This document shows, piece by piece, positions 29,822 through 45,127 of a DNA stretch of 64,000 bases. This DNA is from Neoconidiobolus thromboides FSU 785 (Eukaryota; Fungi; Entomophthoromycota). A program made the position numbers and the translations under genes. Each line of letters opens with the position of its first letter. The stretch's first letter is position 1. A model generated the notes under the pieces. It was given only the letters and a program-made list of their open reading frames with translations, was not told where the DNA came from and made no database searches. The stretch covers positions 321,457-385,456 of the forward strand of contig MU626258.1 of the NCBI GenBank assembly GCA_025603075.1, written 5' to 3'.

Positions 29822-30922
29822 ATGATTTCCAGCAATCTCAATAAATTAAAAGGTTTAATATCTATCATCTTCTTTACACATGTTACATTAGCCTCTTTGA
29901 TACTAACTATTTTACTTTTCTTAAACCCTTTAACCTTCCCATTCACAATTCTTTATTATGTCCACGTATTCTATGATCAAACTTATGTGAATGGTGGTTC
30001 TCCTTCCACTTATTTCAAATCCTTATTTATATGGAAATGGTTCAACGAATACTTTTCTTCTAAAGTGATCTTTGATAGCACTATTTCCTATGATGAAACA
30101 TATATATTTGGTTATCATCCACATGGTGTAGCTGGTTTTGGAGTCTTTGCAAACTTTGCTTCCATGCATTCCAATTTTTATCAGCAGTTACCCCAATTTC
30201 GATTAAATATTGCTACATTAAACCTGAATTTTTATTTACCATTTCATAGGGAAGTGTTATTAAAGTTAGGGTTTATTTCCGCAAATAAAGAAAGCTTGAA
30301 AACCGCTTTGGAAAAGGGACAATCGTGTCTGGTAGTCGTTGGCGGTGCCAGTGAAGCTTTGTTGGCCAATCCAAAGTCCACCGATGTGTTATTAAAAAAC
30401 CGATTCGGATTCATCAAACTGGCATTAAAAACAGGGTAAGCTTTAAGACAGTTATGAATAATCAATGTATTTAATCTATCTAACTCTTTATCATTATTAT
30501 AGAAAGCCACTGGTACCAATATTTAGCTTTGGTGAAAATAAATTATATACTCAACTGCGACCAAGTAAAGGCAGTTGGCTGGATTTAATTCAAAAGACGT
30601 TAAAAAAGGCACTATCTTTTTCAACACCTATTATTTATGGCCGAGGTTTCTTTCAAAATTCTATTGGTCTATTGCCAAAGAAAGTACCTATTGTTAGTAT
30701 AAGTAAGTTGATTATTAGTAACAATTTATTTGCTTTATTTATTATCCTTTATTAAAAGTTGGTAACCCTATTTATGTTGAAAAAGATGAGAATCCATCCC
30801 ACGAAAAGATTGAACAATTACTTGATGTATATAAGGCAGAATTAACGAGAATTTATAATAAGTATAAAGTAGAATATTATAATATGTTAAATGAAGAAGC
30901 TCCAGAGATTCAATTTCATTAG
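29822..30922 (+). CDS. DGAT2/MGAT-family acyltransferase A (exons 29822-30435, 30503-30702, 30759-30922)
   Basis: FGYHPHG, VVVGGASE, RFGFIKLALKTG, LVPIFSFGEN, GLLPKKVP; exon 3 GNPIYVEKDENPS...*. Confidence 0.93.
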
Positions 30923-31171
30923 TAAAAAATAAAAACAACTTTTAAATGTTGACTATAATCTCTATGGCCTAAAAATAGATTAATTCTACTTTGATTTAAA
31001 GAAATATAAAATGAACAAGTTAAAACAGTAACATCAATAATAAAAATTTATTAACTAAATTTAATATGCTTTTTTAAATCTTTTCTATTAACTCCATTTC
31101 AAGTCAATTATACAACTTCCCTCACATTTTAAAACTAACATTAACTATTCAATTTCTTATTATTATCCAAA

Positions 31172-38253: not shown

Positions 38254-40009
38254 TTATTCCAATTTTTCATGTTCAATTTCAGATTTCAAAGAATGACACT
38301 TTTGAATATATAAATGGATCAATTGTTGGATCTCTTTCTCATTTTCATTAGAATAGTTACATACTTGGATGGGTTCACCAACTATAAAAATAAAGTAAAT
38401 ATTATATTTAATAATTCAACAAAAAAAACTTACTAATATAAACAAGCTCCTTTCTTTTAGGTAATAAACCTAATATATCCCAACTGTAAATGGTGGGCTC
38501 AAACAATTGAATAGTAGTTGAACTTTGAATCCAAGATTGTATAGAGTTAAGCTCGTAAGTTTTAGAATTTTGTTGAATAACTGGTATAATATTGTAACTA
38601 TATAAAATATTAGTATAATTATTGGCATAATTAAGTATATAAACCTACCCGCCTTTTACCACCTTTTGGAACATTTCTATTTGATTCTTTTCTTCTACAA
38701 TCATCAAATCATCACATTTTACCTCCCCTCCTTGATACAAATTCACTTTTTTGTTCAAATTTTTACTTAAACCACTACCATCATTCATAAAATTAATCCA
38801 AAAAGCTATTTTTTTTTCCCCAGAATATAAAAACACCACTTTATCCTTTTTATTAATATCCCCCAACACTGCGTTACGTACTGGATAATAATTCAAAAAA
38901 TGAGTGAGCAAAGGAAAGCCTAATACTTTTTGAAGATCCAAACTAATCTTAATAAAGAAATAAAAGGGCCATAACATTGGTAACAAGAAAAAAAATTTGT
39001 TAAAGAGAACATAAATTATCACTGTCAATCTTACGATAATTTGAATCAAAGATTGACGCTTTAATTGGGGTTGATATTGTTTCTTGTAAAACTGAGGCTT
39101 TTGAATGGTATCTTTTTCTATGGTTCCATTAATTTGAATTTTATCATTAGAATCTTCAATTTTGTCATGTTGAATTCCGTTACTACTTACGTCCCCAGAT
39201 AGTTGTCTAGACTCTTCAATAGTAACTTCCCCTTCTTTCTGATTATTTGATTCAATGGTCATATTCTCAACATTGTTATTATCCTCGCTATTTTTATGTT
39301 CAATAGATTGTTCATTTGATTCTTCAGCCTGAGCTTTATTTTCTTCAAGTCGCTGTTCTCCTTGAACTTTACTTTCTTCACAATCTTCTTTACTTTGAGC
39401 TCCAAGTTTTTCAAAATCTTTCTCAACTTGAGCTTTGCTTTCTTCAGGAGTTTCGTTCTCTCGGACTTTGTTTTCCTCAGTTGTTTCGTTCTCTTGAGCT
39501 TTGTTTTCTTTAGGGGCTTCTTGAATTTGCACTTCATTCTCCTCTACAGCTTCTTTAACCTGAGTCTTATTTTCTTGTGCATCTTCAGCTTTATTGTTTT
39601 TCTGTTCAACTTTACCATTAGCTTCAGCCTCCTCTTGATTCTTTTGATCTTTATCCCCTTGAGAAGCGTCACTTTCTTTAGCAATAGATTTCGAATCCTC
39701 ATTACTTTTGTTATCTTTATCTTCAATAACTAGTGCACCACTCTTTTTTTTTTCTTCAGGGCTGGTACTTGATTTATTCAAGTCACTATCATATTTTGGC
39801 TCCTCTTTAGGATTCGAGTCACTTTCAACAACAACGCTATCCTTTTGGGCAACTTGCTCTACTTTTCCATCTGCATTATCCTGTTGCTTTACAACAACAG
39901 GTTCTTTACTCTGTGCTTGTTTTTTGGTAGTAGTACCATTGCTATTATTCCCCTTTTGCTTATTCTTACCATTTGTTTGTTGATTTTGTTTTTTACTTTT
40001 GCTACCCAT
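38254..40009 (-). CDS. DGAT2-like protein lacking catalytic motifs, with an acidic 11-mer-repeat N-terminus (exons 40009-38649, 38597-38434, 38381-38254; 550 aa)
   Basis: Open through two GT-AG introns (51 and 52 nt). C-terminal part aligns with the neighbouring DGAT2s: LPMLWP, YYP, INFMNDGSGLSKNL, GLLPKRKELVYI|IGEPIQV. The HPHG position reads SGEK. Confidence 0.82.
39305..39568 (-). repeat. Eight tandem 11-aa (33-bp) coding repeats
   Basis: KTQVKEAVEEN/EVQIQEAPKEN/KAQENETTEEN/KVRENETPEES/KAQVEKDFEKL/GAQSKEDCEES/KVQGEQRLEEN/KAQAEESNEQS. Confidence 0.85.
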
Positions 40010-43961: not shown

Positions 43962-45127
43962 TTAAATAAAACACATCTCAGGTGGACTAGGAATTGGAGA
44001 ATACAATGCCTTATTGCGATTATATAAATCTAATAAAGCATCCATATATTGTTGATGAACTTCAGCTACTAGTTCATTACTTGGATTATCGACTTGTTTG
44101 ACTTTGATAGCTTTACCAACTAAAAGGAAAAAGTTAATAAAAATATAGTATGGAGTGATAATGAACTTACCAACAATTGTTAATGGTACTCTCTTTGGCA
44201 TGATGCCGTAATTATAAGTAAAAATACCACGACCATGAAAGATAGGCATAGTAAAACCTAACGCTTGCTTCATTTTAATTTGAAGTTTATGAATATAGGA
44301 ATCTGGTTCTGGAATAACGGTATCTAGGATTTGATTTTCTCCAAAACCAAACACTGGTACTAAGTTTGAGCCTGTTTTTATGGCTAATGATACAAATCCA
44401 AAACGTTTTTTTAATACTAAATCTAAATTATTTTCATTGGCTGATAATGATTCTTGTGCTCCTCCAACGACTATGACACAAGAGTTGCCTATTAATTAAT
44501 AGGTTAAATAAACTAATATCATCAAATAAAAATAAACTTACCTTTTCCAGATTTCAAAACATTTAAAATGGCTTTTTTAGAAACAGAAATAATACCCAAA
44601 GCGAGTAACAGCTCCCTATAGATTGGCATAAAGAAATTACTAGCTAAGGTGCATAATCTGATGTTAAGTCCAGGTAATTTTTCACTTAATTTAGTGCCAT
44701 TAGTAGCAAAATTAATAAATGCCCCAGTACTTATAATCCCATGTGGATGATAACCAAAAATATAAGTTTCTTTGGGGTCCAATTCTTCTTCAACAATTAA
44801 TTTGGAGGGGAAAAACTCAGCTAACCAAGTCCATATTGTCCAGTTTTTAACCCAATGATTGATACGTCCTCCTTTTTCAGCGGCATTATCAAAATACATG
44901 AAAATAAAATAAGCAAATATTAAAGGCCATAACATGGGGAAAAAACATAAAATAAGAAAAAAGGATTGAGTCAATGGCATCATAGAGGAATAGATAAAAG
45001 TAGCAAAAGTTTGACGACGTCTAGTTAGAGGTACATCCAAAGGCGCAAACTCCATTTTGGGTAAGTTGGTAAAGGAGCTACTTTTACTTATTTTTGTGGA
45101 TTCTACTTTTAAGTTGTCGGTAGTCAT
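43962..45127 (-). CDS. DGA1: Diacylglycerol O-acyltransferase DGAT2, copy B (3 exons)
   Basis: FAPLDVPLTRRRQT, FFP, FGYHPHG, VIVVGGAQE, RFGFVSLAIKTG, LVPVFGFGEN, VHQQYMDAL. Confidence 0.95.

Follow-up and report, generated by a model that had tools for sequence, protein, structure and literature searches.

Gene C of Neoconidiobolus thromboides, a probable non-catalytic DGAT2 descendant acting at the membrane

Gene C of Neoconidiobolus thromboides, an insect-associated entomophthoralean fungus (Zoopagomycota), probably encodes a maintained, non-catalytic DGAT2 descendant that acts at a membrane. Judged by two shared intron positions, the gene is a lineage-restricted descendant of a duplicated A-type DGAT2 gene. 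Its product lost the HPHG motif, the RxGF...VPxxxFGE block and a unit of the core, and gained an acidic extension of ~310 aa, while the membrane hairpin, the C-terminal helix and five strands of the core were retained. Because the gene is transcribed, spliced and under purifying selection, these catalytic losses argue for a working pseudoenzyme, unable to form triacylglycerol through the mechanism of DGAT2. The last step of fat storage is set by DGAT2 enzymes, whose regulation and movement between the ER and lipid droplets are incompletely understood.

A transcribed and spliced gene between two DGAT2 genes

The window, that is, the whole stretch of 64,000 nucleotides that was analysed, has a GC content of 27% and introns of ~50 nt. 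The product of neighbour A is 100% identical to the GenBank protein 'diacylglycerol-acyltransferase [Neoconidiobolus thromboides FSU 785]', encoded on scaffold MU626258.1 of assembly GCA_025603075.1. Gene C lies on the minus strand between A (29.8 kb) and B (44-45 kb). Its three pieces (40009-38649, 38597-38434 and 38381-38254) join in frame to 1653 nt, encoding 550 aa with one terminal stop. The 454-aa open reading frame that begins at 40009 ends at a TAG inside the GTAGGT donor, and the joined model agrees with the preliminary description, which had carried this frame through two canonical introns into a stop-free protein of 550 aa. The features are as follows (a slash within a peptide marks the splice point).

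29822..30923, plus strand: paralogue A (P0001), canonical DGAT2 of 325 aa, HPHG at 30116-30127
38649..40009, minus strand: exon 1 of gene C, from the ATG at 40009 through codon 453 and two further bases; RNA contig X1 covers 40013-38649 with zero differences
39080..40009, minus strand: N-terminal extension of ~310 aa, absent from canonical DGAT2, no family in Pfam
39305..39568, minus strand: ~eight degenerate units of 11-residue period, K[AV]Q.E....E[NS], from a register print and a TRF period of 33 nt
38939..39049, minus strand: hydrophobic hairpin, residues 321-357 including LPMLWP, the counterpart of the membrane hairpin at the N-terminus of DGAT2
38813..38824, minus strand: SGEK (residues 396-399) in place of HPHG, by alignment and HHalign
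38598..38648, minus strand: intron 1 of gene C, 51 nt, GT..AG, phase 2, within the Gly codon of KGG/Y, with a TACTAAT branch-like site
38434..38597, minus strand: exon 2 of gene C, from the remnant of the VPxxxFGE region through GLLPKRKELVYI
38382..38433, minus strand: intron 2 of gene C, 52 nt, GT..AG, phase 1, at YI/IGEPI
38254..38381, minus strand: exon 3 of gene C, C-terminal helix region of the DGAT2 fold, TAA stop at 38256-38254
43962..45127, minus strand: paralogue B, canonical DGAT2 of 353 aa (three-exon model), HPHG at 44749-44738

RNA contig X1 (1559 nt, 100% identical to the window) carries the joints 38649/38597 and 38434/38381 exactly, which are the two junctions that the preliminary description had named, and contigs of runs X2 and X3 have the same joints; the exact splice joints of gene C are present in RNA contigs of three sample groups. 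Since contigs without the GT..AG introns are only possible from spliced RNA, the gene C model is experimentally confirmed. The X6 contig, 1648 nt from a relative ~91% identical, has its splice joints at the corresponding sites and extends 34 nt beyond the stop, and its T-rich loose letters before 38220 may represent a poly(A) tail. The assembler word depth of the gene C contig in X1 is 1703, a poor measure of expression. Runs X2 and X3 contain two versions of gene C (window 38446-39098), ~99% and ~93% identical to the window, the latter with differences in common with the X6 sequence; the two versions could reflect a sample of mixed origin, heterozygosity or hybridity of the strain, or a pair of paralogues.

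The GenBank gene calls around A leave the interval empty from the end of the Sec63/DnaJ gene (window ~38152) to window 40922, where the locus ends. A phmmer search with the 158-aa exon-1 domain piece of C against 1.84 billion protein representatives returned 0 matches, and hence no orthologue outside the close group, and a protein homologue search with C residues 300-454 returned no match either, not even to gene C's own product. Because GenBank has no call here and the gene's own product is missing from both protein searches, we take gene C to be unannotated in public data. A PDB sequence search with gene C gave no match, and the best score of an ESM Atlas feature search, 0.57, is meaningless. 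The public annotation of this genome thus lacks a transcribed gene with spliced contigs at high word depth, and the gene has been seen only in one close group of an obscure fungus.

Descent from an A-type DGAT2 gene

When the unspliced exons of C were submitted separately to Pfam DAGAT (PF03982), exon 1 gave no match and exon 3 scored 11.8 bits (E 0.11, profile positions 248-281), below the gathering cut-off of 22 bits. Once the exons are joined, the match of the protein to DGAT2 is significant, collinear and full-length, as the preliminary description had supposed. Our own HMM, built from 16 DGAT2 sequences, scored the joined gene C at 34.6 bits (E 7.5e-13, Z=1), the maximum among 2000 shuffles being 7.9 bits, and the match runs across exons 2 and 3. 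HHalign of C 318-542 with A 9-305 on the family alignment gave 97.3% and an E-value of 2.3e-11 over 224 collinear columns that extend from the hairpin to the C-terminal helix. By blastp, the C domain matched A in its C-terminal half (39.3 bits, E 3e-8) and B in its N-terminal half (30 bits, E 4e-5). Overall, gene C is ~22% identical to the DGAT2 family.

The residue-level matches reported earlier were all found again, namely KRQS opposite RRQT, LPMLWP opposite FPMLWP, YYP opposite FFP, and the matches of the C domain at INFMNDGSGLSKNL and GLLPKRKELVYIIGEPI. Exactly 19 residues separate YYP from SGEK in C, as they separate FFP from HPHG in B.

The position and phase (2) of intron 1 are the same in C (KGG/Y) and A (KTG/K), and by its tblastn break-point the gene in L003 has this intron as well. 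Intron 2, in phase 1, is common to C (YI/IGEPI), A (SI/IGNPI) and B (IV/VGKAI). As the first intron of B sits elsewhere than in A and C, and C has two intron positions in common with A, we derive gene C from an A-type copy. A maximum-likelihood tree grouped A, B and P0002, which would fit a local expansion, and left C unplaceable on a branch of ~10 changes per site; the origin of C is therefore argued from intron positions and location.

The scaffold holds further members of the family. A and B are 38% identical, and B (43962-45127) was missing from the matches of a protein search with A. Three more DGAT2 copies lie ~190 kb off on MU626258.1, namely P0002, which is a canonical DGAT2, P0007, and a copy annotated with 79 aa. 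P0007 (L003:9893-10893, plus strand) is annotated with 142 aa ending in ...LALITG, and the tblastn alignment with A resumes beyond a gap of 86 nt, such that the gene spans A residues 35-312; from its sequence it looks like an under-annotated full DGAT2 with a missed intron at the KTG/ position of intron 1 in A and C. Directly downstream of P0002 (L002:11813-12640, plus strand) lies a second HPHG-less DGAT2-like copy, with a DAGAT annotation of only 79 aa; it has LLDL for HPHG (context YILGYLLDLILD), SGAEE for GGxxE and SAGF for RxGF, and the surrounding in-frame stops could be due to introns or to decay. The preliminary description, in speaking of two active paralogues, was thus too narrow, as a minimum of two further DGAT2 genes of canonical appearance, and one further HPHG-less copy, share the scaffold. 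The DGAT2 family of N. thromboides is expanded to at least five genes. It is thus both expanding and decaying, with C as a copy that was remodelled and kept.

Catalytic losses and selection on gene C

At 38813-38824 gene C encodes SGEK where both neighbours have HPHG, which confirms the earlier reading. In plants, the DGAT2 motif is EPHS instead of HPHG. The histidines of the C domain are residues 370, 531, 538 and 546, with none between 371 and 530. Only 12 of the 42 columns invariant in 15 DGAT2 proteins are kept in C; the 30 lost ones include, in A numbering, H99, P100, H101, R143, R194/G196/F197 (RxGF), F214/G215/E216 (FGE) and R252. In the block RxGFx(K/R)xAxxxGxxx(L/V)VPxxxFG(E/Q), Q443, E445 and M446 replace the R, G and F of RxGF and FGE is deleted, and G454 and I458-P459 remain. 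C also keeps the GG of GGxxE (G427 and G428), so that the erosion previously described for GGxxE, RxGF and VPxxxFGE holds for RxGF and FGE and not for this GG. At the YFP position, YYP (374-376) of C is a conservative change; the corresponding residues are FFP in B and YFS in A.

A core block of ~40 residues, A 124-165, has no counterpart in C. Over the entire C-A alignment, 94 residues of A face gaps and 23 residues are inserted in C, giving a net loss of 71 residues against A, and the earlier estimate of 45-50 missing residues was thus too small. A PDB sequence search with A found no solved structure. Positions are given on an AlphaFold2 model of A (mean pLDDT 80.5, pTM 0.81), whose best PDB matches are PlsC, PatA and GPAT, with the classical His-dependent acyltransferase fold. 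In this model, the deleted block comprises E128-132, H134-137, H142-149, E151-153 and H156-164 (E, strand; H, helix), which leaves the PlsC-like acyltransferase core of C one beta-alpha-beta-alpha unit short. On the same model, C retains both helices of the hairpin, the strands A 81-84, 95-99, 168-172 (GG follows), 208-214 and 269-272, plus the long helix at the C-terminus.

The catalytic standing of HPHG, taken as established in the preliminary description, is upheld by mutagenesis of yeast Dga1, in which H193A, H195A, HPHG>EPHS and YFP>AAA each abolish activity (PMC3075658). Given these mutants and the loss of HPHG, catalysis by C through the DGAT2 mechanism would not be credible.

The X6 transcript was compared with the window. 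In the exon-1 part of the domain, 28 of 427 positions differ (6.6%), whereas nucleotide divergence is ~11% in the N-terminal extension. The X6 domain has no stop, frameshift or indel, the sole indel overall being a 33-nt in-frame gain in the repeats. Across codons 312-550, 21 of the 37 listed differences are synonymous and 16 non-synonymous, corresponding to a dN/dS of ~0.16 (dN 0.028, dS about 0.17-0.20, binomial p = 3e-7), a value that would rise to ~0.3 if all ten differences left out were non-synonymous. Those ten, out of a total of 47 for the domain plus the 34-nt 3'UTR, fall close to piece ends or within the 3'UTR. The frame in the relative's transcript is thus intact and the domain ratio far from 1, the outcome that the preliminary description had linked to a maintained gene. 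SGEK is unchanged in X6, and the next codon is changed (K400E). For the N-terminal tail, a dN/dS of ~0.5 is a rough figure derived from nucleotide divergence. Because the divergent X2/X3 allele has the X6 differences, selection is measured in effectively one independent pairwise comparison. In addition, 8.5% of random codons in this genome are stops and gene C has 550 open codons; at gene C base composition, a random frame of 240 codons would stay open with a probability of ~5e-10. On these sequence comparisons, gene C is maintained by purifying selection.

Possible membrane role and relation to known systems

The extension of C begins with a basic stretch of 45 aa (10 K/R, 2 D/E) and continues as an acidic low-complexity region (70 D/E vs 39 K/R). 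At 39347-39354 the X6 transcript has 39 letters for 6, a net gain of 33 nt and hence exactly one extra in-frame 11-residue unit, so repeat number varies in frame between relatives. These repeats presumably resemble the perilipin 11-mer repeats and group 3 LEA proteins: like them, C has a strict 11-residue period, with ~eight units beside a hairpin of lipid-droplet type. Unlike theirs, the C units are very acidic and polar, with a sole small hydrophobic position (A/V) and with Pro/Gly interruptions. Membership of C in these repeat classes was rejected, as Pfam gave no match at E <= 1 for the 454-aa exon-1 protein and the units are almost wholly polar or acidic. Amphipathic lipid binding by the repeats is doubtful for the same reasons, together with the Pro/Gly breaks.

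Downstream of the extension, Kyte-Doolittle hydropathy exceeds 1.5 at C 327-348, as it does at A 18-38 and B 57-71, and the C hairpin aligns with helices H2-34 and H39-51 of the A model. In DGAT2 proteins the N-terminal hairpin inserts into the membrane and both termini are cytosolic (PMC3075658). The kept hairpin would likewise insert C into the ER membrane or the lipid-droplet monolayer with both termini cytosolic, and this should leave the tail and the remnant domain on the cytosolic side of either. The shrunken, strongly constrained soluble remnant would then serve in binding, either to a partner, for which active DGAT2 paralogues are the most plausible candidates, or to a lipid, and the acidic tail would be displayed on the cytosolic surface. 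To read C as a specific regulator or tether in this way, or as the scaffold that the preliminary description also proposed, is tentative. Somewhat more speculative still is a new lipid-droplet/ER surface protein that tunes triacylglycerol storage, whose hairpin and remnant might dock on DGAT2 paralogues, DAG or acyl-CoA and whose acidic 11-mer tail might coat or space the droplet.

Alternatively, the new acidic 11-mer tail could be the functional part, and the DGAT2 remnant a mere anchor on the ER or lipid droplet with no interplay with active DGAT2. Such a division of labour would suit the retained hairpin, the 310-aa extension found in none of the canonical DGAT2 proteins of the alignment, and the in-frame differences in repeat number between relatives. 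It is nevertheless unlikely. The soluble remnant is the most constrained part, with 8 replacements in its 184 residues (367-550) against 8 in the 49 of the hairpin region (318-366), and the tail has diverged more than the domain (~11% vs 6.6% at the nucleotide level); a mere anchor would not need residues 367-550. With constraint strongest in the soluble remnant, we favour binding, to active DGAT2 paralogues or to a ligand that is a lipid, over anchoring alone.

The soluble domain is under purifying selection and keeps YYP and GG, as could also be expected if C were still an acyltransferase, or another lipid enzyme, working through different catalytic residues. A shift to LPAAT activity has been reported for some algal DGAT2 homologues (PMC7853605), a precedent for such neofunctionalisation. 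We regard this reading as improbable, since both HPHG histidines are gone with no His nearby, 30 of the 42 invariant residues are lost (R143, R194/G196/F197 and F214/G215/E216 among them) and ~40 core residues are deleted, whereas single His mutations suffice to kill yeast Dga1 (PMC3075658).

More improbable still is an ordinary transcribed pseudogene whose open frame and conservation reflect recent inactivation. The DGAT2 family on the scaffold is unsettled: another copy lacks HPHG, some annotations look like fragments, and C itself is unannotated, as decay would allow. However, a gene that has diverged to ~22% family identity along a branch of ~10 changes per site yet holds 550 open codons at 8.5% random stops, has both introns precisely spliced and shows a dN/dS of 0.16 at a dS of about 0.17-0.20 is not readily explained by recent inactivation, and ordinary decay is disfavoured. 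That C is an unrelated membrane protein with a chance or compositional likeness to DGAT2, as the null single-sequence searches (Pfam exon 1, phmmer against the 1.84 billion representatives, PDB and Atlas) might hint, is refuted by the own-HMM and HHalign matches, which lie far above shuffles and run collinear from hairpin to C-terminal helix, by two identical intron positions and phases, and by its place between two DGAT2 genes.

In the full-text literature searched, DGAT2 and pseudoenzyme were not found in combination and no inactive, HPHG-less member of the DGAT2 family was described; as the preliminary description had stated for fungi, no described DGAT2 pseudoenzyme was found there. Within that literature, C would be the first pseudoenzyme reported for the DGAT2 family.

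Compared with the DGAT2/Dga1 family (PF03982; DGAT2, MOGAT, AWAT), the non-catalytic DGAT2 descendant that we favour is alike in its membrane hairpin with a PMLWP-type turn, its YFP-like YYP, the strand order of its PlsC-like core, the GLLPxRxxxxxIGxPI block, the C-terminal helix, the two intron positions in common with A, and its place in a DGAT2 gene cluster. It differs in having SGEK for HPHG, in the loss of RxGF, FGE and R252 with 12 of 42 invariant positions kept, in a domain 71 residues shorter with A ~124-165 deleted, in the added 310-aa acidic N-terminal extension, and in scoring below the Pfam cut-off on separate exons. It is common for enzyme families to include paralogues that have lost catalysis and been retained as regulators or scaffolds, pseudokinases and iRhoms being examples. 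Like these pseudoenzymes, C is the homologue of an enzyme family that has lost its catalytic residues, is expressed, is under purifying selection and lies beside canonical paralogues, although its loss of activity, in contrast to pseudoenzymes in general, is read from sequence. If C is indeed a maintained dead DGAT2 paralogue, it would serve as a natural probe for the parts of the fold that support targeting or partner binding rather than catalysis.
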